From Hydrolagus colliei (lineage: Eukaryota), in NCBI GenBank assembly GCA_035084275.1, contig CM068756.1, forward strand, positions 14,570,001 through 14,634,000: a stretch of 64,000 bases of DNA. The letters are read 5' to 3'. Shown piece after piece: positions 1 through 23,371 of this stretch; position 1 is the first letter of the stretch; each line of letters opens with the position of its first letter. The notes under the pieces were generated by a model. The model was not told the origin of the DNA, ran no database searches, and saw nothing but the letters and a program-made list of their open reading frames with translations. Made by a program: the position numbers and the translations under genes.

Positions 1-231
1 ACAGAATATACTGTAAAGTAAATTTACTGTATAGATATGCGTGAAACGTGGCAGCCAATTGCACACAGTAGTGTCCCACAAACAGTCGTGGATTGAAATG
101 ATGATTTTTTCTCGAGGGATTATTATCAAATGTGTGTGGTAAGGAAACTAGTCCAAAGTTTTCCCCAGCCTGGAATCGAACCTAGGTCTCTCACTTGTAA
201 GGCGAGTGCTCTAACCACTGAGCTACAGGAC
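1..231 (-). mobile_element. tRNA-derived SINE (DeuSINE-like family, representative copy)
   Basis: Reverse complement starts gtcctgtagctcagtggttagagcactcgcc...ggttcgattcc (A/B-box tRNA-like head), followed by the body ctgtttgtgggacact..tgtgcaattggctgccacg found dozens of times in the window. Confidence 0.75.
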
Positions 232-687
232 AATTAATGCTCAGAGTTGTCAAATCATGAAGCATTATATTATCATAATAATAATTATTGTATTTGATAT
301 ACAACAACAATAACAAAATTACATTTGTATAACGCCTGTCACATTGGGAGGACATCCCAAGATGCTATATAGTTTTTTCACCTCTTGTGACAGTGTCCCA
401 CAAACAGTCGTGATTCTTTGACCAATTATTATCATATTTAATAAAATAATGAGAGTGAATTTAGGTGGCTGCCAGTTTGAATTGTGCACAATTCATTTTT
501 TTTAATTGGATTTTTCAGCGTAATTATATTTCTTTCCTGGGGAGCGCAACATTGCCATAAATTTACAGATAATGAAATTCAAGAACACAACTGTAAATGT
601 AACGAAAACTATAGAAGAGATTCGTAAAGAATTCTTGTGGGATATTCAAAGATAGGAACAGTTTCAATATCCGTATTAGTCACTTAC

Positions 688-1008
688 CGTACACGGTTAA
701 ACGCGATCCATTTCCATTCCCTGCTTTTTCCCCCAGTGACCTCACGGCGCAGTAATAGACTCCAGCATCCTGAATATTCACATCCAGGAGCTGGAAGAAG
801 CCACTTCCTTTGGTTTTAACCCCAAACTGCTTCCTGCTGTCCTCTTCTGTATGTAGGTAGACACTCTCCCCCTCCTTCCACCAGTACACATGGATTCGCA
901 AAGAGTGTAGAGAGAATGGATAGCTGCAGTAGAAGGTTATGTTTGTTCCTCTGTTTGCCGTCAAATGTTTGGGGAATTGACTTATTTCAACGGATTTATC
1001 GCCAGAAA
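688..1008 (-). CDS. Gene A, VJ-type Ig V-domain exon (NKp30-like V)
   Basis: 321-nt exon flanked by ttcttcatAG and GTaagt, phase 1/1. VSGDKSVEISQFPKHLTANRGTNITFYC...VYWWK...DVNIQDAGVYYCAVRSLGEKAGNGNGSRLTVY, with the canonical Cys, Trp, DxGxYxC and a J-like G strand. Confidence 0.9.
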
Positions 1009-1242
1009 CTATGAAGAATTAAATATTGATGCATGTTAATATTGATAATTGGTTAGGGAAGCAAATAAGTAAAAACAGATAACATACATACAGATGCATT
1101 GAGAGTAAGTCAGTAAATTGTGTTTATTCTGAAACTACTCGGTGATAATAATAATGCTTGGATTTGATATCACGCCTTATCACAGAAAAATATACTGTAA
1201 AGTTTAGTCACAATCTACTTTCACCACTAAATAAACACTTAC

Positions 1243-1291
1243 CCGTGGAAATAATAACCAGAACACACGTGTATAGCAAATAACATCTCAT
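1243..1291 (-). CDS. Gene A, leader (signal peptide) exon
   Basis: ATG..MRCYLLYTCVLVIIST+G followed by GTAAGT; 49 nt, phase 1, in frame with the V exon. Confidence 0.85.
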
Positions 1292-1374
1292 ATTTCTAAC
1301 CGCCTGGCGCGACTGATCTGAAGCTGTTGCTGGTCTATAATATGCATTTGCAGATTGATGTGAAATACATTTTG

Positions 1375-1392
1375 TGACGTTTGACTTCCTCT
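1375..1392 (-). promoter_or_regulatory. Putative ETS (AGAGGAAGT) + CRE half-site (ACGTCA) upstream of gene A
   Basis: Motifs lie about 85-100 bp upstream of the ATG and are copied at 7169-7186. Motif match only. Confidence 0.35.
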
Positions 1393-2667
1393 CTCTTCAG
1401 GAATGGTCAATTGGTTAATAGGCTGTAGCGATTTACACCGAAACAGTGGTTTAGGATTGCATCAGCAAAAGCTTGAGAGGCTCGTCGAAAAAAATATGAT
1501 ACGAACAAGATAAAATGTAATCGAAGTTGGGGGTTTAAAAATAACCTTCGCTTCTTGAATCTGAATGTTGGTTAAAGGAAGTCGTTCCCCACTATAATTT
1601 TTGGGATGAATTTTACGAGACACCTCTTTACCTTACAGTTGCGTCATATTTCTCTCTACTTTTAATACATACTAATTGTGAAACCTACTATAAATATGTT
1701 TCCATGTACATATTTCATCAGCGATTTTCTTTACAGGTTTCGTTTGATTGTTTGATTAAATAAGTATTTATTGATATCATGTTTGATTGAGGGTAAAGTG
1801 TAAGGCTAAAACTGCATCCATGTAAACTCTTTAAATACATTCAAACTGTTTTCTAACTTATGGAAAACAGCATATTATTGATTATTAATCCTCTCCTCAA
1901 TCATGGCCCGAACCTGCTTTCGGCCATGATTGAAGAGAAAAGCAGCAATAAATATATTGCAATATATTGTTCTTGATTTCATAATATTGCCACACAGCTT
2001 TCTGTATATCAGTTAGTACTGTGCACATTTATGAAGACGAGCACACCATGGCTGCTTGACATGTTTCATAATGTTATTTGGAAACCATCATTTATAGTAC
2101 CAAGGCAGTGTAGATGCAGTAATTAAGAGAATTTATTTGCTTCTGTCGTTTTTTTGTGGATGTATTCACCCAAAAATACTGTATATTTCCAGTTTGTCTG
2201 ACCTTGGACGGTACAGGCAGATTAACGATTAAGCAGAGTTAACAATTGACATACTGATTTTCATGGTATTATTTTATATTGAATTGCGAGGTTAATGTGG
2301 AGCATTTAAGTTTCGGTGATGTGGCCATGGCTATCTTTCTTTTAATCGATTTGTGCAGCTTGGAAGTAAGTCATTCAATTAGTCACCATACCTACTTATA
2401 TTTATAGTTAAACCAAATTGTGAATTTGAGTCCTATCAATCGTGGTAAAACAATTGTTTTTATTGACAACAAAGATACTGTATAAAGACGAATAAACCAA
2501 TTTGCAGAACAAAGAGTAATAGTGTAACAAACTTGGAGAGGCAAGATCCTGGGTTGTATCAGAAGAGTGTTTAAGATCCCAGATCTCTCTCTTTTGGAAA
2601 GTCTAACGCAAGGCCAAATGGCCTGTCTGGTAGTTTGGAGCAAGGGGAGTTGTTAAGGCGAACGCTG

Positions 2668-2772
2668 GTAAGAGTGGTTCGCTCTTTTCAAAGAGCCGGC
2701 ACAGACTAGATGGGCCGAATGGCCTCCTTTTGTGCCGTAAAATTCTATGATTCTATGATTCAATGATTCTAA
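2668..2772 (+). mobile_element. CR1 LINE 3' tail fragment
   Basis: cgctcttttcaaagagccggcacagactagatgggccgaatggcctcc...(ctatgatt)n, the same tail as the CR1 copies at 26.4 and 37.7 kb. Confidence 0.75.
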
Positions 2773-4949
2773 GATATGGTCTTGCCCTCCCATGCCCCAC
2801 CCCAGACAGCAAGCCGCCCCTCTTAGATTGTGTTCTGTAGACAACAACAAAATTGCATTTGTATGGCGCCTTTCAGGTCGGGAGGATATCCCAGGTGCTT
2901 GAAAGAATGTGGCCTAATGATGTTCGGCTGCTAAGTTTTTCCTTAAGTTTGAGTACAGCTGAAACCATACCCCTAGATACCAGACAGGACTTTGAATGGA
3001 GCTTCCAAACCAACCTATTCCACCTTTGGAATAGGTTAAAATAAATAGTGAGAAAGTATCATAATGCTCTATGATTAATCTGTCTGTTTTGGTTTTGGAT
3101 CAGAATTGAACTCTGACTCAGGCAACACTCAGCAATGATTATTGGACCAGAGAGTGGATAACTACAAGAAGGAACATGATTAAATTTGATTCTAACGACT
3201 TTCAACTTTACAGTTGCAGTAATGTCAACGTATTATGCATCACAACCACTATTTTACTTGGTAATAATTTCACATTAAACTTTTCTAATATACCAGGGAA
3301 ACCCTATGTCCTGTTCATGGTGAGCAATATACAGTATCAGTGTCACTTTGTCGACTCCTCAATTTGATTCGGGGGAACACATATAACACATATTAGTTTC
3401 AAGCTTTTCGAGATGCAGTCAGCCGTGAAGGGCACAAGTTGTTGTTGTTCTCAAATATTTGTGATGGTCAACCTATTATACAATAAGCAGCAATGCGGTA
3501 AAGAAGGGGAGCTTGGGGGAACTCAAAGGTGAAAATATAAGCCTATGATTGATCAAAGTACAGTTAATATGGAGCCATAATTTCCAATTATACTCAAACA
3601 AAGTGACCCAAGAATTGAATGCACATTTTTTCATTGACTCTTCCTACCCATAAACAGAGACAATTGTGGTGTGGGAAGGTGACCATAAGCATGGCTGAAG
3701 CCGTCTTTATCGAAGTCTTTAATTATGATCTAGAAGGCGGAGGGAAGCCTAGCTAGGACTGGTATGGTGAGGAAATCTATGACAATACTGGCGGTGCTGT
3801 TTTGGATCAGTTTAGTTTGTGGGTGGTGAAACTTGGGAGGACAACGAGGAGCGCATTATATTAGTCGAGGTAGGAGGTGGCTAAGCCATGGAGAGGGGTT
3901 TCGGCTGCTTTGGGTGGGAGGTATCGCCCAAAATGTTCAAATAATCCACAATACTGCCATTCCTATCCGAACCCGCATTCAACTATTGCATATCACCCCA
4001 ATCTTCAACAAGGTCCATAGACTCACTGTCTTCACACCGAATCGACTTGAAGGTCTAACAACAACAACAACTTTATATAGTGCCCTCCACGCCGGACGGC
4101 ATCTCAGATTGCTTAATGTATGAAATCTTTGAAAATGTGGAATTCATTCTTTGCTTTTCATGGTGCTATTTGAGCTGTCAGTTCACACTGGCAAATTTAC
4201 AAAATTCAGACGAGTGTTAATCCTTACGATTGAAAATATTACTGTTAATGCGGTTCCAGGAAGCAACTACATGTTATGGAGCTCTGCAAACCACATGCCA
4301 CAGATTTATTTAAAAGCATAACCTACAGCTCCACCTTATGGCATATTATATAGTAATTCTTGCTTTTCGTGCAGCAATGTTCCTTTCTGTGATAATAATA
4401 ATCATCCTTGCATTTGATACTGCACCTTATGATGTCTTCACGACGACTCAAAGCGATTTAAAATGCTTATCAGGTTTCTCTGTGAAATTTAGTAATTGTA
4501 TAATTTGTAGGCTAAGATAAAACAAACTATTATTCTTTTCAGTTAAAACCTTGTTATATGCGTATACTATCTTGTGAATAACTTTGTTGGGTCATTATAT
4601 ATATATACACCAATGTACTCACAATAGCACCATAATAATAATTAGTTAAATAATTTATACCGGTGACTTGGCTAACAAGCTCCCCAATAAAATTGGCCAA
4701 TCCATTGTTGTACGTGAGACATGGCACTGTACAAATTCATGATCGTGGTCACCTATAAAATATCCACAATAGCAATACTTTACAGTATATGATTTGAAAT
4801 GTGTGTGAGAGTGATGGCTTGAAGTTGGTCAGTTTGAACATTAAGCCAGCGGAGCTTGGTGAGGATTGGAATAGTGCATGTAAGGTTACGAGTGGTGGAA
4901 TTATGGATTAGTTGAAAACCTCGTGGATGATTAAACGGAGCAAATCTGA

Positions 4950-5900
4950 GAGGAATGCATTTGAGAAGTCCAAGAGGGAAGTATAAAAGCATGGACCAGA
5001 ATTTCGGTGACATTTTCTGTGTGAGGTAGAAGCCAATGGCGTTAATTCGGTGGAGATTAAGTGAAGCAGTCTTGATCAGAGACTGAATAGGAGATAGGAA
5101 GGACAGCTGAGAATGGAACCGGATGTCAAGGTTGAGAACACAGGGAGTTTCAGGTAAAGACTGGGGAGGTTAAGGCAGTAGAACCTGAGGGAGCTAACGA
5201 GGTTGGCTTCCATCTTGTCCATGTTGAGTTGCAGATGGTTGCTGCTCATCCAGCCCTTGATATCTAATCGGCAGACACACAGCACATCAGTGGGCCTGGG
5301 ATTGCTAATGGAAGTAGAAAATTAGATTTACATGTCATTTGCATAACTGTGGAAAATAACCTTATTTATGTGGATGGTGATTCCAATAGGAAGCACGTAT
5401 CCCAAGTTTCCAATGCAAGGGACAGCCTCAATCAAACTCTATAGATTTTGGACAACCTGTATCTATCTTGGGCATTAATGGTGATGCCCATCTGTCCATC
5501 TTCCCCCACAACTGGCCCCTAACCAAGAAAGCTTTCCTCCACTTCCGCCACAGTGCCTGCCTCTGACTGTACCTCACTGTCAAGTCATCTGAAACCCTCC
5601 TACGTGCCTTTGGCACCTCCCATCTAGACTACTGCAATACCATTTTCGCCACTCTTCTCACCTCCACTACCTACAAAATAAACTGATTCAAAACTCCACC
5701 ACCCATATTTACCCCAGACTAAACACTGTATACCAATCACATTAGTTCCAGCCAATTATCCATCCATCTTCCCTTTCTTCCCTTATTTCAAATCACAACT
5801 TAATAGCTTTCTATTCAACTGTACTTACGGCCATGTCCTCCCCCACCACCTCACATCTCACCACAATGAAATGTGAAATGCCATCTGATATAATATGTAA
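4950..5900. mobile_element. Degenerate L2 LINE RT fragments (both orientations)
   Basis: The minus-strand ORF contains DIKGWMSSNHLQLNMDKMEA, matching the L2 RT segment MSTNFLQLNVNKTEA at 28.9 kb; the plus-strand remnant follows it. Confidence 0.6.
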
Positions 5901-6577
5901 TCAATTCACATTACAACATATTCTGTGAAGCCCATTGAGAAGCCTCAAAGTTGTGATAAAGCACTGTATCGAACAAAATGACCAATAGTATAATTATCAA
6001 TAAATCCTTCTTTGATAAAAGAAAATATCTTAAAAATCGGCCGATTAAATAGCTATACAGTAACTAAAGGAAGTTTGGACATTTTGCTTTGTTGTGTGCA
6101 ATATAAGTAATAATAATAATCCTTGCATTTGAGATAGTGCTTTTTACCTTTTATCGACGTCTCAAAAAGCTTCACTGTAAAGTGAATTGATTGTATATTT
6201 GGGAGGTGACAAAGGCATGCAGGAGGGTTTGGGCTGATTTTCGAGTACAGCGAATTATGAAGAAAGAGCTGGAAGTAGATGTGGCACAAAATTCAAACCA
6301 CAATCTATATTGGGGAACAACTTCCTGCAGTGTATTAACCAACATGTTGGTTCAGGAAATGATGGTTATTTTTTAACCTCAACTTCGGATCCATTTATCT
6401 GCTTTCAACATTTTCTGTGCACTCCTCTCTTGCGATTGCCGATACAATTCTAAGCCACTGAGCCACAGTGTATTATGGCCATTCATAAAGAGGGAGTCAA
6501 ACATCACGTGAGATACTTCATATCAATCCGTATATGCTACAGACCAGCGACAGCTTCCGATCAATCCGATGACAAAT

Positions 6578-6626
6578 ATGTCAAGTCCTTCGCTATACAT
6601 GTGCATCCTAGCGATTATTTCCACGG
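6578..6626 (+). CDS. Gene X, native leader exon
   Basis: MSSPSLYMCILAIIST+G followed by GTATGT; 49 nt, phase 1, paralogous to the gene A leader. Confidence 0.75.
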
Positions 6627-7007
6627 GTATGTGAATACTCTATCACACAGTTTATTTAACATGGCAAGTAGACTGATCAGCTCCAGATTAAACACCCCAG
6701 TTTACAACAACAACATAATTTTAATTTGTATGGTGCCTTTCACAGCGGAATGGCGTGCCAAGGTGCTAGATAATCAATGTTTTTCAACCAAGCTGATAAT
6801 TAGGATGCGGTGGGTGGAGGGGAGGAGGGTGATCCAAAGTACGATCGAGGACGAGGGTCTTGGAGAAATTAACTGACGTGTCTGTATGTATCTTTTGTCT
6901 AATTTCACTTTTTGCTTCGCTACCCACTTGTCAATATTAACACGTATCATTGTTTCATTTTTTATAGTTTCAATTGTCACTATTAACATGCATTTAATTC
7001 TTCATAG

Positions 7008-7056
7008 TTTCTAGCGGTAAATCCGTTGAAATAACTCAATTCCCCGAATATTTGAC
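7008..7056 (+). pseudogene. Gene X, 5' fragment of the original V exon
   Basis: ttcttcatAG then VSSGKSVEITQFPEYLT, paralogous to A's VSGDKSVEISQFPKHLT; breaks off at ttgac|taaac. Confidence 0.8.
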
Positions 7057-7269
7057 TAAACTTTACAGTATATTCTGTGATAAGGCGTGATATCAAATCC
7101 AATATTGTAAATCCCTACCCAATTGTAAATCGCTACAGCCTATTAACTAATTGAGCATTCCTGAAGAGAGAGGAAGTCAAACGTCACAAGATGTATTTCA
7201 CATCAATCTGCAAATGCTTATTATAGACCAGCAACAGCTTCAGATCAGTCGCGCCAGGCGGTTAGAAAT

Positions 7270-7318
7270 ATGAGATGTTATTTGCTATACACGTGTGTTC
7301 TGGTTATTATTTCCACGG
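7270..7318 (+). CDS. Duplicated gene A-type leader exon (weakened donor)
   Basis: Encodes MRCYLLYTCVLVIIST+G, but the donor is GTGTTT instead of GTAAGT (4-nt deletion relative to gene A). Confidence 0.65.
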
Positions 7319-7549
7319 GTGTTTATTTAGTGGTGAAAGTAGATTGTGACTAAACTTTACAGTATATGTTTTTGTGATAAGGCGTGATATCAAATCCAAG
7401 CATCATTATTATCACCGAGTAGTTTCAGAATAAACACAATTTACTGACTTACTCTCAATGCATCTGTATGTATGTTTATCTGTTTTTTCTTATTTGCTTC
7501 CCTACCCAATTGTCAATATTAACATGCATCAATATTTAATTCTTCATAG

Positions 7550-7870
7550 TTCCTGGCGATAAATCCGTTGAAATAAGTCAATTCCCCAAACATTTGACGG
7601 CAAACAGAGGAACAAACATAACCTTCTACTGCAGCTATCCATTCTCTCTACACTCTTTGCGTATCCATGTGTACTGGTGGAAGGAGGGGGAGAGTGTCTA
7701 CCTACATACAGAAGAGGACAGCAGGAAGCAGTTTGGGATTAAAACCAAAGGAAGTGGCTTCTTCCAGCTCCTGGATGTGAATATTCAGGATGCTGGAGTC
7801 TATTACTGCGCCGTGAGGTCACTGGGGGAAAAAGCAGGGAATGGAAATGGATCGCGTTTAACCGTGTACG
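7550..7870 (+). CDS. Inserted A-type VJ V-domain exon, now upstream of gene X C1
   Basis: Intact 321-nt exon (AG/GTAAGT): VPGDKSVEISQ...GNGNGSRLTVY; 2 aa differences from gene A V. Confidence 0.88.
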
Positions 7871-8331
7871 GTAAGTGACTAATATGAAACTGTTCCTATC
7901 TTTGAATATCCCACAAAAATTCTTTACGAATCTCTTGTATAGTTTTCGTTACATTTACAGGTGTGTTCTTGAATTTCATTATCTGTAAATTTATGGCAAT
8001 GTTGCGCTCCCCAGGAAAGAAATACAATTACGCTGAAAAATCCAATTAAAAAACAACAACTAATTGTGCACAATTCAAACTGGCAGCCAGCTAAATTCAC
8101 TCTCATTATTTTGTTAAATATAATAATAATTGGTCAAAGAATCACGACTGTTTGTGGGACACTGTCACAAGACGTGAAAAAACTATATAGTACTATAGCA
8201 TCTTGGGACGTCCTCCCAATGTGACAGGCGTTATACAAATGTAATTTTGTTATTGTTGTTGTATATCAAATACAATAATTATTATTATGATAATATAATG
8301 CTTCATGATTTGACAACTCTGAGCATTAATT

Positions 8332-8507
8332 GTCCTGTAGCTCAGTGGTTAGAGCACTTGCCTTATAAGCAAGAGACCTAGGTTCGATTCCAGGCAGGGG
8401 AAAACTTTGGACCAGTTTCCTTACCACACACACTTGATAATAATCCCTCGAAAAAAAATCGTCATTTCAATCCACGACTGTTTGTGGGACACTGCTGTGC
8501 GCAATTG
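8332..8507 (+). mobile_element. tRNA-derived SINE, truncated at the insertion breakpoint
   Basis: Head gtcctgtagctcagtggttagagcac...ggttcgattcc; copy of 56-231. Confidence 0.75.
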
Positions 8508-8574
8508 ACTGGTATCGTGATATCACTGGGGGAAAAAGCCGGGAATGGAAATGGATCGTGTTTAATCATGTGCG
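8508..8574 (+). pseudogene. Gene X, 3' fragment of the original V exon (F-G strands / J-like end)
   Basis: Reads ...SLGEKAGNGNGSCLIMC+G then GTAAGT; the following intron is a diverged paralog of the A-type V-C1 intron. Confidence 0.8.
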
Positions 8575-9516
8575 GTAAGTAATTAATATGAGTCATGAAA
8601 CGCTCCTATATTTGAATATCCTACAAAAAAGTTTCTCAGAGCACGTTTTATCTTAAATACTATACACCATATACAGAACATATAATTAGAAATTATTTTA
8701 GAATTTTCTGGTGCTTTAAAGACTGTGATTCTCACTAGTCTGTTTATTCCACCAGTAACCATTCTGTATCTATCTACTGACTTGCAATCTCTAAAGATTG
8801 ATCCACAAGAAAAATGTCTCATATTTTTAAATATATAATTTGATTGCCTTCAATGAGTAGTTGACCCACTCTTGTGCAATTTATGGAAGGTATTGGCGCA
8901 TTTGTATTATTAATGATAACAGTAATAACATATTTGATATGTAGGTATTTCCATGCCTTTCAAATCGACATAAATCGTTGTAAAATCCTGTAACTTTTGT
9001 ACGTGAAGCCGGCACCCAATCTCCAAACAGCAATGTTCAAAAAACATTTTTGATGTAAATGACCAATTTTATCTGTGGAATTGTTGGCCAGGAGCTGGGG
9101 AGAAATCTCTTCTCTTTTCCCAAAACGCTGTGGCATCTTCAGCAGCTCCTGAAGAGGCAGAGGGGACCTCAATTTAATGGGTCCTCGGTGGTGATATCCC
9201 TGAATAAAGCCGCCTTCCCCCAGGGCTTCATTAGGTGTCAAATGGTAATAAAAATCAATGCATTTGATGTGGCGTTGAATCACATCCCAGATAGCTTCAA
9301 ACATTTCATAATCTATTTGTAGGTGAATACGGCCAATATGTGCACATAACCCCCTACCACCGTTAAAAAAAAGAAGTCGTAAAGATTTACAAAGATTTAC
9401 AATCCTTCGAGTCTTCTTGGTCGTCGTCAGTGGATTGGAACTAAATTAATGTGATAGAAATCAGACCAATTTACACCCCCAATTAATATGGTTCTGTCTC
9501 TTTATCTGTTCCCCAG

Positions 9517-9825
9517 TTCCACCAACTCCACTGGCGATTTCCCGCGGGCTTCCCGAAACAAATCAGTCTGTGTTTCTGACTCTTGTGTGTGAAACGGCTG
9601 AGTTTTACCCGGAGAATCTGAACTTTACTTGGTATAAAAATGGCACAGAAATGACAACAGTGACTAACACCATCAAGCAGCAGAATCTCGGGAAATTGTT
9701 TAAAGCTTACAGTTACACGAAGACACAGCGTGTCCAGAACGGGGACGTTTACATCTGTTTGGTGTCTCATATCAGTCTCCAGAATCCAGAAATTGCCAAC
9801 TACATGGTTCAGCTTCCTGACACAG
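9517..9825 (+). CDS. Gene X, Ig C1-set exon
   Basis: 309 nt, ccccAG/GTaggt, phase 1/1; LTLVCETAEFYPENLNFTWYKNG...YICLVSHISL (C1 motifs FYP, WxKNG, YxCxVxHxSL). Confidence 0.88.
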
Positions 9826-10901
9826 GTAGGTCACCAATAATCTTAATATTATTTTATGATATGGTAAATTGTGACGGGATTGTCTTCTTGTATTAAAGTA
9901 TCTCGGAAAATATAGATACACCGTTAGTGTCATGAAAATATGCTGTAATTGTAAAAGCATCCATATTTGAATATTAAAACTGTTGTATGCCCCCATGTTC
10001 CTCTCTAAAAATATTGACACATTTTAGAATCACATCACGAATGAGTCTATTGCAGAATTAAGATAAAATTACATTACTGTTTATTAGTGAAATATTTTTG
10101 TAAAGTATTGTGATAATGACAGCTTGCATTTATATAATGCTCTCTAAGCAGGTAGCATCTCAGAGCGCTTAACCATGACGGAGCCTGACTGCGCTCATGG
10201 TAGATGGGTTGGTGGGGGTGCCCGTAAGCGCAGTTGATGGGGAAAGTTTTGAGGTGGGGCGTGAAAAGGGGGAAATAGGAGGCAAGGTGGGGGAGAGTAT
10301 TCCAGAGTTTCGGGGCTAAAGTAACCCTCAGAATTAGATTTGTTTGCATCAACCCTAGTGTTTCATACACAGAAACTAATCACCATGATTCAGTTTAAGC
10401 AAACCAGAATAAACCTTCCACATATGCAAGCTACCTAGACGTAGTAATTTCCTCACGTTTGGAATCGAGTGCACACTCTCCGAAATGATATATTTTGTTA
10501 ACCTAATTCCACAAAGGAATCCAATTTTCTGTTTTCATTTCTGCATGTTTTATTCTGGATAGGTAACCTTAGGTGACGGAATTATAAAATGACCTTGCTA
10601 AGAAATAGAGCATAGATAAAGGCATATTTTCTCTGTTTTAACCGTCCTTTCAAAAGAGATGTTTTGTTTTGAATTTGATAATATTGGGGCACTGCACTGC
10701 GGGAGTCATAGAGGACTGCACTACTCGTTATGAATTCTAAACGAAGAATAGTGCTCCCAACTCACCTGAGGCACATTAGTGAAACAAATTACCTTTAGTG
10801 TTCAAAACCACATATGATACAGCAGAAATTATGTTATGTCTTTAAAAGTAAGACCTAACGGGAAAAAAAACGGTTGATCATATTGCTTTTCATTCCAACA
10901 G

Positions 10902-10915
10902 AGCAAATTGAATGA
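10902..10915 (+). CDS. Gene X, putative terminal exon (adds EQIE*)
   Basis: The acceptor cattccaacAG is homologous to the terminal-exon acceptors of B (30587) and C (43517); in phase 1 it gives GAG CAA ATT GAA TGA. Confidence 0.45.
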
Positions 10916-13374
10916 TGACAGACCATTAATTCTTTAGCGGGTGTCGCCTTAAAATCGGAAATACGAACAAACCTTGAAATCCATGTAAGATTTACCAACT
11001 GTGCATATTTTCAACGTGAACTTGAGAAGGATGTGCATGCACATAGAACAAGTACATAACATTTTAATTAGTTCACGTGTTTTAGCATGAAGAATCGTTC
11101 CCTTTAAAAAGTAGTTGTCATTTTTAAAGTGAACATTGCACGTTATTGCGACTATCTGAATACCAATGAAGAAGACGGATAGCAGGTGAAGTATGAGATT
11201 TTAGCAACAATTTTCAGGACTATTATCATATTGTGTGCAACATTGAACAACTTGTGCTTTTATTTGCTGGTCAGACATTTTTATTTACTGAAAGTTTTAA
11301 TGCTTTAGAATTTTTCATCTGCAGCAGCACATTAATTCATATACTCCACAAATTCCACCACAAATTCTTAACTAAAATCACCAATGAGCTGTACTGTATG
11401 CAATTTGGGCTCCATGTAAGTAAACCAAAAGCTTCCACCACGGGATGTGCAGATTGCATTTTTCCGAATGCAACTGAGAAACAAAGTGGAATAGAGAGTA
11501 TCAATGGGACCAAATATTGTACAATTTGAATGGTTATAATGCCTCAGTTAATCCGCAAACAAATGTGTTGTGTTTTACATATGGATAGACAAACACTATA
11601 CCTGTGGTCACTTCACCTGTACATTTAAATTAACAGCCACCTAATCGATTCCCGATGTTGATTTGTCAAATTCGAATGATCATCAGTCCCAATTTAGGTG
11701 AATAAAGAATCATATAATTCTGCAAATACCTGTGTAGCTTGTATTGTACATTGTAGATTTTAAAGATGCTTGCATAAAATTTATTGAATTGCATTGAACG
11801 AAGTATTGTGATCTTGATGTTAATGAATCATTTTGCAATGCTTAGGATTTTAAGCGAAATGTAATCAGGAGCTGACACTACTTTGCAAATTCATCGAATT
11901 AAAAATAACAACTACATGGTTGCGGACAGCAGATAATAGCTGAAGGGGACATTTTTAGAAAAACAAGATAGCCCACAAAACTTTTACCAGCATTTGCTTG
12001 CAAAACAAACGAGGTTCGAGTAAGAGCATTTTTCCTGGAAAATACATGGTCACCACTGCCTATTCTGTAAAGCCCTATGAGAATTCTTCTGACGTGAAAG
12101 ACCCTGCAATATAATTTACATTATACAGCGCTTTCAGATCGGGAGGATGTCTCACAGCGTTCCAGTGAGTTGGGTGGCCATTTGTGGCAGGGTGAAAGTC
12201 GTGGGGCCCCGAATGGAGGAAAAATATAGGTGGGAGTCAACAGGGTCAGTGAGAGAGAAACATGACCAAAAGCATGGTCAAAGAGATACTTTTGAAATGT
12301 GCCTTGAAGGAGAGAGGGGTTTTGGGGGATGGGAATTATTTTAATCGAACCAATCGTAGTTAGATTGCTATATAATTGCTAAAATGATTGGAAAGGCCAG
12401 AGTGCCATCAATTTCATTCCATAAAAAATACCACACAGGCGATATACTCCAATGTCATGGTGTTGGCGATTTGATCTTCCCTAGGAAGCGGAAAAGAAAC
12501 TAAAAAAAACTCCACAGAAAACAAAAGTAACGCTGGATCGGGCAAAGGTTCACCTGGACATTTCCTTCCCCATTCTAAAAGGACGAGAATATTTATCTGC
12601 ACTTATTGGGTGTAACTTAAAAAGAACGTTTGTCTTTCAGCTTTTTTTAAAATAAAGTGAATGTTATCCATATATATATCTATAGCTATATATGAAAGTG
12701 GCTTCCATCGGCAAGACATCTTAATGGGCTTGGCATGCTATACTGTACTGCAATGTGCAAGACTAATTTGCAGAGAAATACCATCCTTAGGGTTAAGATC
12801 AGTCAAATTGAATATAGTAATGTTCCTCAACATTTGTTGTTTTTGTGGTTTAATTTCCTTTGCAGGATTCTTGGACAAGAGACTGAGAGAAACCCCATCT
12901 CTTTTCCAGCCGTGACTTGGGGTTTCTAACATACATCTGAACAGAAAGAATGGACCAAATTCTACCACACCCAAATAACAATTGCATTCATATAGAAGTT
13001 AAGGTTATGGCATATAAGAAGGATATTCAGTCCAATGGCGCTGTAGCAGGGACCATTTGTTTATATTGTTTATATTTATAAGTTGTTGCAATAATAATAT
13101 AATAATCCTTGCTTTTGATATGGTGCTTTTCACATCTTCTAGATGTCTGAAAGAGTTTTTCAGAATATTTTATAAAGTAAATTGACTGCGTTATTTTGTG
13201 AGCAAATTGCAGCACCGAACCGTGCACAGCAGCGTCCCACAAACAGTCATGGATTGAGTTTCCATACATCTAAAAAATCTTATTATTCTTTTGGTCAAGA
13301 TCTGGGGATAAATTTCCAGTCTTCCCGAATAGTATATTTCCATGTTGATGTGGACAGGTAACATGAACCTAAAT

Positions 13375-13515
13375 ACCCCAAACTGACAAAGCATTGTGGA
13401 CCTGAAATGTTGACTCACTTTTACTTTCTCCATAAATGCTGCCTGACCTGCTGGTTGTTCCCAGCGATTTCTGTTTTTGTTTCAGATTTCCAGCATCTGC
13501 AGTATTTTGTGTTTT
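13375..13515 (+). mobile_element. Penelope-like / shark retroelement 3' terminal fragment
   Basis: atgctgcctgacctgctg...tcagatttccagcatctgcagtattttg, recognised from memory as a common shark retroelement end. Confidence 0.45.
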
Positions 13516-13624
13516 TGTTCGCTATACAGTATTTATCTTCCAGTATCTCTCCACTTATAGATTTTTCGCTTTGTTTCTCTCCACTTATATTTAGACAATC
13601 TCTGTTTGAATTTATCTTTGATAA

Positions 13625-13917
13625 TTATTGATAACACTTGGATCAGACTAACCCAACACACATCACCTTCTACCATATATTTTATGTTGCTTCAAACAAT
13701 ATACATATAAACTTGTACCAGTGGCAGATTAGGGAGAGTGGATACCTGCAAACAAAGGAGGACAAAATAAAAAATTTTGGTCTGAAACGTCAATGAAGTG
13801 GGAACTTCTTCCATCTGCTAGATGTTAGAGTCCAGGATTCTGGAGTCTACCATTGTGCAATGATAGGTGAGAGAATAATAGCAGGAAATGGAACTCAATC
13901 ACATCTAATTGTCTGTG
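13625..13917 (+). pseudogene. V-exon pseudogene (B/D subfamily)
   Basis: Acceptor AG>AA, first Cys>His, 5' deletion and in-frame TGA at 13794; the 3' part retains FHLLDVRVQDSGVYHCAMIGERIIAGNGTQSHLIVC and a GTAAGT donor. Confidence 0.88.
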
Positions 13918-14638
13918 GTAAGTGTGTTCGCAGTCCACAGCATGCTTTGGGTAAATACACCCTTTAAACTGAGGTGCTTCATTAATCGTCGAGATCTGAT
14001 GGAGGTCTCTAACCCGGAAATAATTCATTCGAAAGTAGAGTAATGACAATACCCATGTTTCATCCATATCTATAGTCAATTTACTTTACAGTATATTCTG
14101 TGAAGCGCTTTGAGACATCTAGAAGACATGAAAAGTGAAAATGCAAGGAGTAATAATATTATTATTAAGACGTGATAGTTTAAAGATTGAAAATGGTTGG
14201 TTTTAATAGGAAGAGACATTTATACATGATAAATAATCCCTGCTGATGAACTGCATTCTATCGACCTACAGAAATAACTTTAGCTGGGATTGCATATGAT
14301 GGCCATTAATGAAAAGTAAGCGAATAAGATTGGATGACATTTGCTTTCAATGTTGTCATTGTAGTACTAACAATTGTAAAGTATTAGACAGAGTAAATCG
14401 GTGCATTGAATTTGTGTCCTCTGTTATGCAAGATTAATTGTATTTTACTCAGGTGACAAAACATTAAAAACAATTACACATTTGTATTTCTCAAATATTA
14501 GATATTACACCAATCCAAAAAAGAATGCTGATTATGTATATTTGCTCCATCACTCACACCGTGGCTGATGCCACCAGCTATCCAAGAGCAGCCAACCTGA
14601 CTGCCCGCAGTCTCACCACAAGGTCCATCGGTCCCCAT

Positions 14639-15068
14639 TAGGGTCCGTCGATATGGAAATTTTCCGATATCGATATATCGGTTGGCTCATATCGATATAT
14701 ACCGATATATGAATATCGCCGGGTTTTTTTATACTGCGCATGTGCACGCATTCGGAGGTGCGCATGCATTCTGGTGTGTTCACACATTCAGATGTCTGCG
14801 CGCATTCCAATATGCGCTCGCATTCCATGCTCTAGGCCCAGGAGGTTTGCAATGCCGGCGACAAGGTAAGTTGAAAAAGTTTGCATTATACTGATATAAC
14901 CGATATATCGATATATCGCCAGACACGATATACTGATATTTGCGATATACCGATTTTTTTAATACAGAATTTTTTGATATACCGATATATTTAAATTTCC
15001 AATATCGGCATATTGATATGAAAAGTTATACCGATATAACCAATATATCGATATATCGCCGGACACTA
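14639..15068. mobile_element. hAT-type MITE
   Basis: TIRs TAGGGTCCGTCGATAT / rc TAGTGTCCGGCGATAT, perfect 8-bp TSD gtccccat (14631-14638, 15069-15076), many CGATAT subterminal motifs. Confidence 0.88.
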
Positions 15069-15069
15069 G

Positions 15070-16240
15070 TCCCCATCTATGGTGGTCAAACTCTCCTCCC
15101 TCATCCATATCTCCACCCTCCCTCTCCACCCACCCACTCTGCCTCATTACTTGCAATCCTCCACCACCAACTGTCTCCTCCACATTGGTATGCAAAATGT
15201 CTGCTCACTCTCGAAAAAGGCAATCGCACTCCACAACCTCACCATCGAAGTAGCATTGACATTCTCGCCCTCACTGAAACCTGAGTCATCTCAGCCAACA
15301 CCTTCCTTCTGATCGAAGCCACACCATCCGGCTGCACCTTCAATCAAATCCCATGGCCTAACTGCCATGGTGACACTGTGGCTCTCAACTCTGGGTCCCC
15401 TCTCAGCTTTTCCCTTTCCTCTTCCAGAACCTTTCCCACCTTTGAGCACCTTACTCTCTACCACCACTCCAGTCTCTCCCTCAACATCCTCCTTGTCTAT
15501 GATCACCTGCAAGGCCACCCCACCTTCCTCTCATATATCTCCACCCTCTTTGTTGCCTCTCCCTCTGCTCTGAATGCCTCCTCATCTTAGGTGATTTCAA
15601 CCTCCACTTCACCCCATCCTGCTCTACATCTGGTGACTTCACCTCTGTTATCTCCTCCATTAACATCTACCTCCAATTCCACCCCACCATCCACATCAAT
15701 GGCCATCCCCTTGACCTAGTGATCATCCAGGACCTCGCTGTCTCAGACATCGCCATCATCGATAAAGCCATTTTGGACCACAACTTCATCTCCCTTAACA
15801 TCTCTGTATCCATTCCCCTTACTCAATCCTGTAAAATGACCTGCCACTGGAACTAAAATATCCTCCCTCTCTGCTGCATAGGAGTCATCTGAACTCCTGC
15901 CCCTCTGGCCCTCACTAACTGACTTGCCCTCTTTGCTCTCTTTTTCCCAGAGCTAACTCTCCTCCATCCTTGATTCCCTTGCCCCCCTCACCTCCCAAAC
16001 TTCCACTCCAGCGCCTTGGGACATCCTCCCAATGTGAAATAAATGTAATTTTGTTGTTGTTGTTGCCTCTTTCTCCTGCAAATCCTCCTGTTATACTAGC
16101 CATCTCTGATCCCTCAAGGCACAAGTGTGAGCTGCTGAACCAAATCCAAACTAACGGTTCATTGGCAGATTTGGCTTGAACTTAGTAAGAACTACCACTC
16201 TGCCCTTGCCTCTGCCACATCTGCCTTCTACTCAAACGTA
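15070..16240 (+). mobile_element. Degenerate L2 LINE, endonuclease region
   Basis: C-rich sequence with remnants LGDFNLH (near 15590) and HINGHPLDLVII (near 15700), typical of the APE domain; an L2-type tail follows. Confidence 0.65.
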
Positions 16241-18138
16241 ATCCTGGAGAGACTCTATTCAGGATCAACACTGAGGGTAGGAATTCGTGACATTGGAGGG
16301 CAGATTAGGGGAAGGAGATTGACCAAAAGCATGCTCAAAGTGGAGGGCCTTGAGGTGGATCTTGAAAGTGGCAAGGGATGGGGCGAGGCAAAGGGGCTGC
16401 GAGATGGGAGGTAGATGGATTGAGAAATATTGTCCATCTGGCAACTTGCAATGCCCCACTGACATTTGGGTGCCCAGCTTCCACTGTAGCCTGATCAATC
16501 AAATATGAATCAGATGGGATTGGATTATACCAATGATATCTGTGTAAGATATACAGTGCTGTACATTGTCAGCTTGAGTCCTCAATTTTAGTTGATGTAT
16601 GAACAAGCACATAACTTTGGCTCTCCCAAGCAGAACTCCGATATCAGGTTCTGCAATTCAAGCCATTTGAAAGTACAAAATGCTCACTAACATTGGAAGA
16701 AAAAAGAATGGAGTTGCACGATAGAAAGGCATGGTTGAAAGAGATTCAATGCCCATGTTGGTTACCATTCCCAAATAACAGAAGTTCATCGGCTATCCTT
16801 GATCTCTAAGATTTTCACAAGATTTATATCTGAGCATAACATCATTCTATTTCGTATTAGGATAATCTTTATTGAATCAATGCAAAAGCTTGTGCCATAG
16901 TAAGCAAAATAAGCAAATTAACCATTAAGCATAAAATAGAAGTGACTTTGGTCCCTCTGGCATGGGATTCCCAAGTTTATATTTTGGCTTTCTGTATTTT
17001 CTAGATGTGTCTCTTGTCTTAGGCTTCAACAGAGTGCTGAAATCCACTGCTGGTCACAACTTCAAACCCAAGAACTGTCTGAAATAATAAAATATCTATG
17101 TGCACTACGTGACCCAAATGCACATCAGTGAAATATGTTGTTGCTTCTTGCGGTTTAAAGGCAAAGTAAGATCAAACAAGGTACACCGTTTAATGTATTG
17201 GGCAATGAATATAGTATTGGTTAAATGACAGAAATGTTATTGACTCCACAATGTTTTGGCAAGTGATTTCAGCAAATTAAAAGTTTGTCATTCATTAAAA
17301 TGTCGCAGGATTAATAATTCAGCGACTGTGTAAATTCAGAATTACATTTAGTTTTTGCTTGTTAGTACTGTAACGTTAATTCTGTGGTATAAGATTTATA
17401 TTCATTTAAATATTTTTGTGCAGTTGTGTTTACAAGGGAATGCATATGTTTGTAGAGTCATTATTGAAAATATCACTATTTTATAAATTTGCAACTAAGA
17501 GACATTAAAAACTGTATAATGCTTGAATTTTCATTAGGAAAACAATCTACTTGTTACTCTCAGCTCTGAGTCAACAGATTTAAGCCTCACCTTCCAGGCA
17601 GAGTTGATGTATTGTGTGCGGTGGTGTATTGCATTGGTAGATCATAAACCCATCTGCATGTTCAGGTTGATAGTAGAGTTCCCATGGTACTAATGCACGG
17701 GAAAATAGAAGCGAGTTACTTCACAACAATCACCAAAATGAAATTGGTCATTCATTTCATGGATGTTTGTGTCTTTGCTGTGCGTAATTGGTCTGCTCCA
17801 TTCACCTCCAATTACTCAGACACTTCATTTCATAGTAAATCAGATGAAGCACGTTGAGACGTTTCCCTGATGTGAAAGTGTTAGATTCAGAAGAAATGGG
17901 AGTTTTCTCAAAGAAACGATCTTCCGTCATCACAGAGTTTTATGATCTTTTTATTCAGTACTACATCCCAGTTATAGTACAGGCACTCCTCTTGTGATTC
18001 GAATAGTTACTTGTTAGTTCGAACCGTTGAATCTTGGAGGATTCAACACATATATATTCAGTTCGCTTTCTTTGTCCTACAGGACCCAATCAGTTAAGAT
18101 AGTATTGCCCAACCAACATGCCCATATTAGGAGCGTTA

Positions 18139-18288
18139 TCCAATGGTCACACACACTTGTTATCTTTCTACACTACAAAGTTATCTGATCCAATGGTCAC
18201 ACACACTTGTTATCTTTCTACACTACAAAGTTATCTGGTCCAATGGTCACACACACTTGTTATATTTCTACAATACATAGTTATCTGG
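18139..18288 (+). repeat. 50-bp tandem repeat, 3 copies
   Basis: tccaatggtcacacacacttgttatctttctacactacaaagttatctg(a/g) repeated with period 50. Confidence 0.9.
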
Positions 18289-19054
18289 TCTAAATCAGTC
18301 TAAACTGCCAGATAAACACAAATGTGTTGTTACAGAGTCACACACAAAACTGCTACATTCCAACAGAAAGGTACTATAGTGAATGTGAATGTTAATATTA
18401 TTATTGTTATAGAGAAGTTTAGGCAGAGAAAAATAAATTAAAAAATTATCTGATGTTCTTCAAAGCGTAAGGTGACTCAACAACAACAACAACAAAACTT
18501 ACATTTATATAGCGCCTTTCACGTCGAGAGGACATCCCAAGGCGCTGTACAGTCAGGTAGGACAAGAGCAGGGTGGGAAGGATCAGGGCAGGATAAAGCA
18601 TAGTAGGAAAAGTAATTGTATATTAGTGGGCGAAACGTGGCAGCCAAATTGCGCACAGCAGTGTCCCACAATCAGTCACGGAAGTGGGACTAGGGGCAAA
18701 AGGGGGTAAAGAAGCAAAAGGGGAGGGGTCGAGGCAGGGGGAAGAAAGGCAGGAAAGTCGACTGTATACTTGTGGACTCATCAGTTAATTGTCCAGGCCT
18801 ACACTCCAATGCAGTACTGTACTTGTCATGGCAAATGATACATTATGGCATTGTTATCTACAATACAAGATTAGTCCCATGTTCCCATGGCATTATTGGA
18901 AAAGAGAAGGGTAGTGTGGCTTGACGACTAGTGTGAAGTCCATAATGGACTATATGTTCAGGTAGCTCCTCACAGCACTCATTTAATATTGACTGTGTTT
19001 CACTTGAATCAATCCAGAAAGGAAGCCCAGCCTCATGCTCCCACCCATCTCAAG

Positions 19055-20090
19055 GACATTAGGGAAGGAAATGGCATTTGGTGTTCAGAAACACTTACTT
19101 GATTATGCAGAAATTTTGCTATTTCATTAAAACTATGATGTAACAGGTCAGCAAAGGTGAAACATTAAGCAAAAAAAACCTATTGATCATATTACTTTTC
19201 AGTACCATAGAGCACATTGACTGAAGCAGGACATTTCATTATTTAGCAGGTGTCGTCTCACAAACAGAAATGTCACCAAACATTGAAATCTATTTAAGAT
19301 GTATCAAATTGTGAAGATTTTCAACCTGAACTTGAGAAGGATATTTATGGGCATTGAGCAAATATATAACATTTTAATTAGTTCACATCCATGTCCAGTG
19401 TGGAGGGTGCTATATTAATCCAAGTTGTTGTTGTTATTTTCTAGCATGAAAAATCGCTCCCTTTAAAAAGTAGGTGTCATTTGTAAAATGCACATTGCAC
19501 ATGGTTGATGAGGCTTTCTGAATAACTATGAAGTTGGCGGATAACTGATGAAGTATGAGATTTTGACAACAGTTTTGAGGACCATTATTGTATTCTGTGT
19601 AACATAACATAATTAGAGGTTTTATGTCAGAGAATAGTCAGAGGATTTCTTATTCAAATGGCTTGAATGTTTTGGAATGGGTCACCTGCAGGAACACATT
19701 ACTTCATTTGCTGAATAAATTCCTCTACACTTTTTCCAAATGCAACTAAGAAATAAAGAAGCATACAGAGTTTTAATGGGACTAAATATTGTATAATGAG
19801 AATGATTATAATGTTTAGTCTCCAAACAGATGTGTCATGTTTTACATATGGATAGTCAAATACTAAGGCTCTGGTAATTTCTCCTGTACATGTAAGTTAA
19901 CAACCACTAAATCAGTTACTGATGAGGATTTGTCAAATGCGAAGAATAATAAGTACCATTATAGCTGTACAAAATTGCAGAATATTCTATTATCATTAGT
20001 TGAATTATATTATTATTATTATTGAATTTGCATTGAACAAAATTACTTTTGTTGTGTAATATTTGCTAATGGATACTAAATGAATAAAAA
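19055..20090 (+). pseudogene. Decayed TM-exon position and 3' UTR of the pseudogene unit
   Basis: The upstream intron matches the pre-TM intron of B/C, but phase-1 reading gives GGA CAT TAG; downstream sequence matches the B/C/X 3' UTRs, with AATAAA near 20083. Confidence 0.5.
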
Positions 20091-21731
20091 CACATCATTT
20101 TTAATTATCTGTGTGGCTTTTATAGTGTATTGTAAATTTTCAAAGATGCTTGCGTTAAATTAAATGAATCCCATTTAATAAAATATTGTGATTTTTATGC
20201 TAATTTGATGTTTTAGCGCCTTGGGACGTCCTCCCGACGTGAAAGGCGCTATATAAATGTAAATTGTTGTTGTTGTTGTTGTTGTTGTTGTTAATTAATT
20301 AACTCTACAACACTTAATATTTCATATCAGCCATGATTGAATGGCGGGGCAAGCTCAAAGGGACAAATGGCCTACTCCTGCTCCTACTTCTTATGTTCTT
20401 ATATGAAATGTAATCATGAGCAGACTCTTTTCATTGAATAACTAAAATGAACTGACAGTAAATAACAACTTTTGGGGAAAATGTTAGGAAAACAGATAGC
20501 CCACGAAACTCTTACTGTCATTTGCTTGTGATAGAAACAAGTCAAAGAGGTTTGAATAATCACCACTATCCTGGAAAGCCCTATGAAACATCCTTCCAAT
20601 TTGAAAGATGCGGCAGTAGAATATACATTTATATAGTGCTTTTCACATTGGGAGAAAGTCTCAAAGCATTTCATGGGTACTTGTGGAAGGGTGAAAGTCA
20701 TGGGGTTTAGGAAGGAGGAGAGATGTAGGTGGGAGTCAAGTTGGGCAAGTGAGGAAGAAATGTGACCAAAAGCATGGTCAAAGAGGTACTTTTGAAATGT
20801 GCCTCGAGGCAGAGAGGGGAGAGGATTATTTTAATCGAACCAATCTACAGTATATATATATTTTTTCCCCAAAGTACTGGAATAGGCAGAGTGCCATCAA
20901 TTTCATTCTAGAAAAAACATGATCACCATCAGTATAATATGATAATAATTGTTGCAGCTGATATGCAGACTAATCATATTGTTAAGCCATCTCAAAGTGC
21001 CTTACAGGATGTATTGGAAGGTGATGTGACTGATTATTTTGGTGCCAAATGCAGCCAATTTGTGAATAGTAATATCCCACTCACAGCCATGGATTGAACG
21101 AACATTTGTTTTTATTTGGCAAATTGTTATAATAATATAATAATCCTTGCATTTGATTTAGCGCTTTTTACATCTTTTAGATATCTCAAAGCGCTTCACA
21201 GAATATATTGCAAAGTGAATTGACCACGTTATTGGTGGGCAAAATGTGGCAGCCAATTGTGCACAATACTGACCCACAAACATTCTTGAATGGAGTGTCC
21301 AAATCGTTACTGTTTCAGCCAAGATCTGGGGATAAATTTCTGTCTTCTCGAATAGTACTATGGGATATTTTCAAGTCCACGTGGACATGTAACTGGGACA
21401 TTGGTTTAACCTCTAATCAGAACGACAACGCCTCCTACAATACACCACCACTGAGGCAACTGCACTGGAGTGCCAGCATACAGTAATGGTGTTTATGTGG
21501 CTCGAACCCCAAGCTTCTGACTCAGAGGCGAGACTGCTGTCAACTAATCAGGTAAATAGAATTGCAAATGAGACTCTATTCTTCAAGTGGTCAACTACCT
21601 TTACAAAATTCAACCAACTAAACCATGGCTTTTGAATCTGCAGAACCAGGATGTTAGTGCGGCAGATTTCATTTGAAACCATTGCAACCCTACATTAAGA
21701 CGTGCGATCGGTTTCAGTGTCAGTGATTGAA

Positions 21732-21786
21732 ATGATGGCAAGTGTTGTTTTCCAGCTTCTGTGTCTCATTGAGATACTTTCAACAG
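21732..21786 (+). CDS. Gene B, leader exon
   Basis: MMASVVFQLLCLIEILST+G followed by GTTTGT; 55 nt, phase 1. Confidence 0.82.
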
Positions 21787-21964
21787 GTTTGTGTTTAGCT
21801 TATATCCAAATGTGTTTAAAAATATGGATATATTACTTTCCATCAATTTCCAGTACAGAAATATCTATATTTATCTTCTTGTATCTCTCTCTCATAAAAA
21901 ATTTCACTTTGTTTAGCTCCAACTTTATGTTTAAGCAATCCGTGTTCAAATATATCTTTGACAG

Positions 21965-22279
21965 TTATTGGCAGCCCTTTGACCCAACATCCAGGGCTCC
22001 GGACTCCAATTCGTGGCGCAAACATCACCTTCTACTGCATCTTTTCTGAAGCTCCAAAAAGTATACGTATAAAGGTGTACTGGTGGAAGCGAGGAGAGAG
22101 TGAATACCTACAAACAAAAGAGGACAAAAGGAAAATTTTTGGTGTGGAACATGGAAGAGGCGGGGCCTACTTCCATCTCCTTGATGTGAGAATCCAGGAT
22201 TCAGGAGTCTATCACTGCGCATTGAGCCGTGAGGGTATAATAGTGGGCAATGGCACTGGATCACATCTAACTGTCTATG
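21965..22279 (+). CDS. Gene B, VJ-type V exon
   Basis: 315 nt, tttgacAG/GTAAGT; VIGSPLTQHPGLRTPIRGANITFYC...VYWWK...QDSGVYHC...GNGTGSHLTVY. Confidence 0.92.
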
Positions 22280-23050
22280 GTAAGTGTGTACACAGTCCAG
22301 ATCGTGGTTTGGGTACTTACATATAACAAACTAACTTAAACAAATCTTAATAATAATTCCTCAAAAACCCCCACGAAAATCATTTGGTCACTCAATCCAT
22401 GACTGTTTGTGGGAAACTGCTTCGCGCAATTAGCTGCCGCATTTTGCCCACAAATATACAGTCAATTCGCTTTACACTATATTATGTGAAGCATTTTGAG
22501 AAATCTAGAAGATGTGAAATGTGCTATATCAAATGCAATTAATATTATCCATATATTCTATTAAGTACTTTCAGACTCTAGAAGATGTGTAAAGTGCTAT
22601 ATCAAATGCAAGAATTGTTATTACAAATATAATATTGTGAGTCTTGAATAACACAACTTCAATGCGCCGATTTACTCTGTCTAACATTTTACAATGCGGC
22701 ATTGCTAATGTTACAATGAAAACATTGAAAACCAAATGTTATTAAAGCTTATCAATTTGTCCTTCATTAGTGCCATCATATGCAATCCCAACTGAAGTTG
22801 TTTTCATAGGGCGATAAAATGTAGTTTCTCAACAGTTGTCTATTCCATGTATAAGTGTCTATTCTGATTAAAATCGACTATTTTCAATGTTAAACCGATG
22901 AACGAATCAAGCGCATCAGTTGAAAATGTATGTTTACTGCTCCAAGGATTTTCATTGTCAACCAATTTCCATGTGACTGTCTGGGAGATATCTTTAGTCG
23001 CGTTAATTGCATTCAAGTAATGTGATTCTCCTTCTTTGTTTGTTCCACAG

Positions 23051-23359: not shown

Positions 23360-23371
23360 GTAGGTTATCAA

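Follow-up and report, generated by a model that had tools for sequence, protein, structure and literature searches.

The locus described here raises two questions, namely how one immune-receptor gene came to carry the leader and V exon of its neighbour in the middle of its own V exon, and whether the resulting composite gene is likely to be of any use. It lies in a 64,000-nt stretch of the Hydrolagus colliei genome (GCA_035084275.1, contig CM068756.1, positions 14,570,001 to 14,634,000 of the forward strand), which is referred to throughout as the window and is numbered from its first letter. A first-pass annotation, made from the letters of the window, had proposed that the V exon of one gene (X) was split and replaced by an inverted copy of the leader and V cassette of a second gene (A).

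The gene cluster and the remnants of the X V exon

The V exon matches the Pfam V-set (E = 1.7e-7; 31.9 bits, cutoff 26) and the exon following it the Pfam C1-set (E = 2e-14), and the top PDB match, SIRP-alpha (2wng, E = 7.7e-16), extends across both V and C1. The J-like strand G-x-G-x-x-L-x-V is joined in the germline, with the V exon ending GNGNGSRLTVY at 7870. The nearest database proteins are those of Callorhinchus milii named 'tyrosine-protein phosphatase non-receptor type substrate 1-like' (74% identity, the closest being P0001), and the elasmobranch relatives show 45-51% identity. This ranking points most likely to a holocephalan, and as no near-identical database protein was found the window probably lies outside the annotated C. 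milii gene set. Relatives are laid out as leader-V-C1-TM, and have either an ITIM-like tail or a short tail combined with a charged TM. Taken together the Pfam V-set and C1-set, SIRP-alpha and Callorhinchus matches point to a SIRP-like family of the IgSF. Each gene in the window, like its Callorhinchus relatives, has a single C1 exon and not a V-C1-C1 ectodomain, and a TM exon (charged, or carrying an ITIM tail) is present in genes B, C and D, with none found for X in 9826-21900. The C. milii P0004 locus was considered as an ortholog and set aside as a different paralog whose only resemblance to the window is in SINEs and in C1 (about 72% similarity). In the literature we found no description of the genomics of the SIRP-like family in chimaeras; the UrIg paper describes another gene, of V-C1-C2-C3 layout (PMC12227049).

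The window contains a cluster of SIRP-like genes consisting of A, X, a pseudo-V, B, C and D (Table 1), and no C1 exon was found after the pseudo-V. The V exons of B and D (21956-22330 and 61275-61650) are 98-100% identical and their C1 exons (23056-23361 and 62564-62875) 96-99% identical, whereas the flanking introns are only about 50-80% identical and the genes lie 39 kb apart. B and D, which form an apparent activating/inhibitory pair, may thus reflect exon-restricted homogenisation or very strong constraint. Given such homogenisation of B and D, exchange of V sequence between paralogs would be unexceptional in this cluster, and it is only the messy, out-of-register route seen in X that stands out. 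Intron blocks of B and C are also closely similar (26359-27156 and 36952-37737, inverted, 95.7%; 27168-27884 and 41546-42257, 94.9%) and represent further recent duplications, part of which overlaps an interspersed repeat also found at 2679-2769. Other repeats in the window include a 1.6-kb satellite (48262-49919, 31/124-nt unit) and a 0.6-kb G-rich minisatellite (32301-32900, unit of about 28-32 nt).

Table 1 Features of the donor gene, the composite gene and the rest of the cluster. Coordinates are those of the window; a slash marks an exon-intron border
Feature	Coordinates or length	Strand	Details
Donor segment, gene A	52..1437	-	Self-BLAST, repeat search, global alignment
Gene A, stretch 5' of the ATG within donor segment	146 nt		
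Gene A leader exon	1243-1291	-	
Gene A V exon	688-1008	-	Intron 1 lies between leader and V
Gene A intron 2 in donor segment	first 636 nt (~640)		Includes tRNA-derived SINE
X leader exon MSSPSLYMCILAIIST	6578..6626	+	Donor intact, G/GTATGT; old paralog of A's leader
5' remnant of X V exon VSSGKSVEITQFPEYLT	7008..7056	+	Acceptor ttcttcatag intact
Junction filler	7057..7123 (67 nt)	+	Built of A-type intron 1 patches; contains a 10-nt duplication
Colinear copy of A 1437-52	7124..8511	+	Orientation is that of X's transcription
Copied promoter-proximal region	7124-7269	+	
Copied leader exon MRCYLLYTCVLVIIST	7270..7318	+	Donor damaged
Copied A-type V exon	7550..7870	+	Intact; acceptor cttcatag, donor G/GTAAGT
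Copied intron 2	641 nt	+	SINE included; intron 1 copied too
tRNA-like head of SINE in copied intron 2	8331..8402	+	
Right junction GTAT	8512..8515	+	X's own V sequence or added bases; possible CTG microhomology before it
3' remnant of X V exon SLGEKAGNGNGSCLIMC	8516..8574	+	Own donor G/GTAAGT at 8575
X C1-set exon	9517..9825	+	Intact; acceptor ccccag, donor G/GTAGGT
Lone V-like pseudo-exon	13635-13964	+	Internal stop and frameshift; about 78% identical to B's V
Gene B	V 21979, C1 23056		Short charged TM 28546-28638
Gene C	V 34030, C1 38566		TM 42531
Gene D	V 61298, C1 62564		Long-tail-type TM 63839-63937

Two remnants of the original V exon of X flank the insert exactly, and are complementary parts of one exon. 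In the repeat search the 5' piece is 91% identical to the copied V (6992-7056 against 7534-7598) from the last part of the intron through the acceptor to V position 49. The 3' piece is 88% identical (8516-8591 against 7812-7887) from V position ~267 to 321 and on through the donor into the intron, and its flank remains homologous to A's intron 2 to about 8636. Both pieces had been reported in the first-pass annotation; the 3' one, however, had been started at 8508, and it is secure from 8516, with 8512 as its earliest start. Nor does this piece begin at the second Cys, as had been stated, as the Cys codon is lost and the V frame reads TGIVISLGEKAGNGNGSCLIMC. According to the remnant alignments ~217 nt are missing from the middle of the exon, in line with an earlier estimate of roughly 200 nt, and the insert between the remnants (7057-8515) measures 1459 nt, in agreement with the earlier figure of about 1.45 kb. 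Within the remnants the old and new V exons share 88-91% nucleotide and roughly 70-75% amino acid identity. Besides its own leader X also keeps its own promoter region 5' of the remnant.

The insert, its donor and its junctions

Self-BLAST of the window aligns 52-1437 with 8511-7124 at 95.7% identity (1399 columns, 2230 bits, E = 0), and the repeat search gives six contiguous inverted arms of 94-99%. By global alignment 7124-8511 is the reverse complement of 52-1437, with 36 substitutions (2.62%; 24 transitions and 12 transversions) among 1375 aligned bases and five indels of 1-8 nt. At 2230 bits and 2.6% substitutions an inverted match of this kind is far beyond chance. The source of the copy had earlier been given as 56-1437; its reverse complement is indeed present, with true limits of 52-1437. 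The earlier description of the replacement as mostly such a copy holds for 7124-8511, which is colinear with A; 7057-7123 is a separate patchwork filler.

The reverse complement of A 1660-960 is homologous to X 6244-7056, comprising the promoter, leader, intron 1 and 5' end of the V exon of X, and the colinearity of A and X runs unbroken past the copy boundary at 1437, up to 1660. On the other side X 8516-8636 is homologous (82%) to the 3' end of A's V exon and the start of its intron 2. As A is colinear with the old promoter, leader and intron 1 of X across the copy boundary, it is A that has the native arrangement, and X is an old head-to-head paralog of A whose V exon was broken later. The donor is A itself or a closer A-like gene beyond the window, for example an unseen paralog to its left. 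With A intact and still colinear with X's older paralogous flank, the donor was kept, indicating copying and not cut-and-paste, and the earlier proposal of a templated insertion between head-to-head paralogs is borne out.

The tRNA-like heads of the SINEs in donor and copy, at 161-232 (-) and 8331-8402 (+), both pass the Rfam tRNA gathering score, with 48 and 56 bits respectively. They are assigned different anticodons by ARAGORN (TAC and TAT), and differ by four clustered substitutions in the anticodon arm, three of which keep stem pairing (C-G to T-A, G-T to G-C).

At the left junction the X V exon ends ...TTTGAC, and four of these nucleotides (TGAC) overlap with a patch of A-type intron 1 (7053-7102, reverse complement of 1210-1158) which matches in exact runs of 22 and 30 nt, set apart by a 3-nt deletion in a T run. 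Further along, 7112-7126 is an exact 15-mer of intron 1 (7499-7513), and the 10-mer ATTGTAAATC is present twice, at 7104-7113 and 7122-7131. The filler meets the long copy, which begins at TGTAAATCGC, with the microhomology TGT/ATTGT. The right end of the copy falls within the SINE body (...CAATTGACTG), with GTAT between it and the V remnant. The first filler patch has CTGTGATAAGGCGTGATATC, which is the idiosyncratic, internally deleted SINE tail of A's intron 1; at this position other SINE copies in the window have CTGTGAAGCGC or CATGAAGCATG. The same SINE-tail patch is also the reverse complement of positions 1-19 of the window, exact over 19 nt (7060-7078), and a source in the SINE of A's intron 2, just beyond the window, would be an alternative.

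Two other readings of the junctions were tried and rejected. Taking 7106-7123 as continued homology with A 5' of 1437 gives approximately 9/13 scattered matches and a 7-nt gap, and as the exact 15-mer stands against these scattered upstream matches we assigned the stretch to intron 1. Insertion of a SINE into the V exon of X as the first event would not give the order observed, with a tail fragment on the left and head and body on the right, which is the reverse of an inserted SINE.

No RSS-like heptamer-spacer-nonamer was found at the junctions or the donor ends, the window background being 0.23 per kb, and no target-site duplication was found at the insert, which has a 217-nt deletion instead. 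As the copy includes intron 1, part of intron 2 and the upstream region with the promoter, the insert is not a retrocopy.

Origin and age of the insert

The structure of the locus, the direction of copying and the type of junction are seen directly, and we consider that they probably reflect a real templated, microhomology-mediated insertion, a reading which applies to structure and mechanism and not to function. Such a germline deletion-insertion would be the product of templated, non-homologous repair. X's V exon would have lost ~217 nt at a break or a collapsed replication fork, and synthesis from the free end would have been primed on A, the head-to-head paralog at a distance of 5.7 kb, or on a closer A-like gene beyond the window. 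Two short abortive copies of 50 nt and 15 nt would have been made first in A's intron 1, each entered via microhomology of up to 4 nt. A processive copy of 1.39 kb would have followed, beginning 146 nt 5' of A's ATG, taking in the leader, intron 1 and the V exon, and ending after 640 nt of intron 2; the end would then have been rejoined to X's V exon where its CDR3/J-like part starts. This signature fits replicative template switching (FoSTeS/MMBIR) or polymerase-theta end joining with templated inserts. On account of the junction features, the lack of a target-site duplication and the copied introns and upstream sequence, in-register gene conversion, RAG and retroposition are excluded from the proposed mechanism. 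The earlier suggestion that the event was independent of RAG is reasonable given junctions free of RSS-like signal.

As long-read assemblies are known for false inverted duplications, and both ends of the insert touch an interspersed SINE family with at least 10 copies in the window, a chimeric join or false inverted duplication could have placed the 5' region of A inside X. Such an artefact is very unlikely: assemblers join at long exact repeats, and here the junction overlaps are of 4 nt or less, far under any assembler k-mer, and are accompanied by a multi-patch filler. The arms, moreover, are 5.7 kb apart and not adjoining, the two copies are separated by all 36 substitutions and 5 indels, and the flanks of the insert are the complementary halves of a single V exon. 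An identical structure would also arise in two steps, if the A cassette had entered X's V exon by fragment capture/NHEJ and a separate, adjacent deletion of 217 nt had followed, or if a circular or tandem A intermediate had been involved. The SINE tail in the left filler and the truncated SINE body on the right can be read as a circular permutation of the SINE of A's intron 2, and the reverse complement of window positions 1-19 is exactly 7060-7078. We nevertheless regard two steps as unlikely, as a deletion stopping exactly at the insert border would be an extra coincidence and the filler carries the idiosyncratic deletion form of the intron 1 SINE tail together with a TGACTAAAC start, in a 22-nt exact match; the permutation form further requires the SINE tail of A's intron 2 to read GATAAGGCGTGATATCAAATCCAA.

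Ordinary homologous interlocus gene conversion or NAHR, leading to in-register replacement of the V exon, might be expected between A and X, which are old inverted paralogs, in a cluster where exon-restricted homogenisation appears to be at work (98-100% identity in the V exons of B and D against 50-80% in the introns). It is nonetheless highly improbable as the origin of this insert, which is out of register and duplicates A's promoter, leader and intron 1 3' of X's own, places 640 nt of A's intron 2 ahead of the 3' end of X's V exon and lengthens the locus by a net 1.24 kb; neither junction lies within continuous homology, and one of them carries filler. Mobilisation of the cassette by a transposon or by RAG is brought to mind by the 3' breakpoint, which adjoins the Cys codon, the V/J split point in antigen receptors and the region where cryptic heptamers act in VH replacement, and by a CACAGTA in A at 64-70. 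This heptamer sits 12 nt inside the copy and not at its end, however, and the junctions are all without a heptamer-spacer-nonamer, a target-site duplication or terminal inverted repeats; with the donor kept and a 217-nt deletion in the recipient, we give such mobilisation hardly any credence.

Non-coding divergence between donor and copy is 3.3%, or 3.4% after Jukes-Cantor correction. Slow substitution rates are reported for holocephalans, and on this basis the event probably dates back many millions of years, so that the insertion should occur in related individuals or species too. If the inverted arms underwent gene conversion this age would be a minimum.

Coding potential of the composite gene and comparison with known systems

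The intact copied V exon and the open leader-V-C1 frame are seen directly in the window. The first-pass annotation had placed an intact A-type V exon upstream of X's C1; its coordinates for both exons are correct, and the V exon has good splice sites, lies 1.65 kb from C1 and, once spliced to it, would give an open frame. The X leader, copied V and X C1 together give 226 open codons, as do the copied leader, V and C1. In comparison with A the copied V exon has three differences, an S>P change, a synonymous change and a V>I change, and judged by the X remnant and Callorhinchus P0001 both amino acid changes are on the copy's side. The donor of the copied leader has suffered a 4-nt deletion (GTAA), which turns CGG/GTAAGT in A into CGG/GTGTTT in the copy. 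The acceptor of the 5' remnant of X, which is the first that X's own leader meets, is a decoy which leads to a TGA stop at 7088, with cryptic GTAAAT donors after it at 7107 and 7125. With the donor of the copied leader gone we infer that expression of X would depend on splicing from its own leader directly to the copied V, past the remnant acceptor.

No TM or cytoplasmic exon for X was found in 9826-21900, the ~12 kb from C1 to gene B, where tblastn searches with five Callorhinchus and Heptranchias tails, and protein and DNA searches with the TM exons of genes B, C and D, returned noise only. In the C. milii P0004 gene the TM exon follows C1 after 350 bp, and in gene D after about 1 kb. Read-through of the X C1 donor adds GRSPIILILFYDMVNCDGIVFLY, followed by a stop. 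X may equally be a 3'-truncated pseudogene or a gene for a secreted V-C1 protein. That it is expressed, its own leader being spliced to the copied V and on to its C1, as a working and possibly secreted chimeric V-C1 receptor is conceivable but rather doubtful.

Divergence between donor and copy is lower in exons (3/371) than in non-coding sequence (33/1004; Fisher p = 0.0075). With constraint on A alone, approximately 6.1 exon differences would be expected where 3 are seen (P = 0.14), and the low exon divergence is compatible with constraint on A alone or on both copies, or with later exon conversion of the B/D type. The earlier claim of a new V/C1 combination appears overstated, as the pairing would be new only if A's C1, which is beyond the window, differs, and the V that was replaced was a close paralog, approximately 90% alike.

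An ETS/PU.1-like core, GAGGAAGT, is present in the copy of A's promoter-proximal region (7160-7185), and X's own homologous position (6478-6500) reads GAGGGAGT. Donor and copy together form a 1.39-kb inverted repeat, 97% identical, around a 5.7-kb spacer (1438-7123) in which lie the promoter, leader and 5' V remnant that belong to X itself. If the arms recombine, this spacer could be inverted and the arms would be homogenised as well; if the composite gene works, such a flip could give X's extra promoter and leader to either gene.

We would regard the locus as a clear further case of rearrangement of an established class, in a known type of gene family, and as a worked example, not a new principle. 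It offers a nucleotide-level example of a whole binding-domain exon moved between immune-receptor paralogs by what appears to be error-prone templated repair and not homologous conversion. The lineage is one that stands close to where antigen receptors arose, and the cluster also has classical activating/inhibitory exon homogenisation. If the chimera is expressed, such accidents can make usable V/C1 combinations. A complete VJ-type exon with its splice signals would then have moved between germline-joined V-C1 genes in a holocephalan, and replicative template switching would represent a RAG-independent cassette route to new receptor combinations. If it is not expressed, the locus is a well-dated example of how members of such families die.

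The genes of the cluster share with SIRP-alpha, beta and gamma a V-set domain that ends in a J-like strand and precedes a C1-set domain, and SIRP-alpha is the top structure match; like the SIRP paired receptors, they include short charged-TM and long-tail TM forms with near-identical ectodomains. Unlike the mammalian SIRPs (V-C1-C1) they have one C1 exon per gene, and X is without a recognisable TM exon; the likeness is one of sequence. KIR, LILR and SIRP paired receptors undergo interlocus gene conversion and domain shuffling. The outcome in X is similar, with the ligand-binding exon of one paralog placed in another, and B and D show the in-register form of this process; the transfer from A to X, in contrast, is non-homologous and out of register, and has left promoter and leader in duplicate and pieces of the old exon in place.

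In chicken and rabbit, V genes are diversified by somatic gene conversion from pseudo-V donors, and VH replacement is mediated by RAG. As in these systems, the V of X has been replaced by that of a neighbour, and the 3' breakpoint adjoins the conserved Cys. The event in X, however, is a germline one, without a homologous tract, an RSS or a cryptic RSS, and as a single, fixed event it does not amount to a diversification system.

The templated insertions of FoSTeS/MMBIR and of polymerase-theta (TMEJ) are known classes of rearrangement. As in these, a deletion in X is replaced by nearby sequence, inverted in genome coordinates, with the donor kept, and the junctions have microhomology and short templated patches before a long processive copy. 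Unlike the usual examples, the event in X is an old germline change within the V exon of an immune receptor, and has delivered a complete and spliceable paralogous exon.
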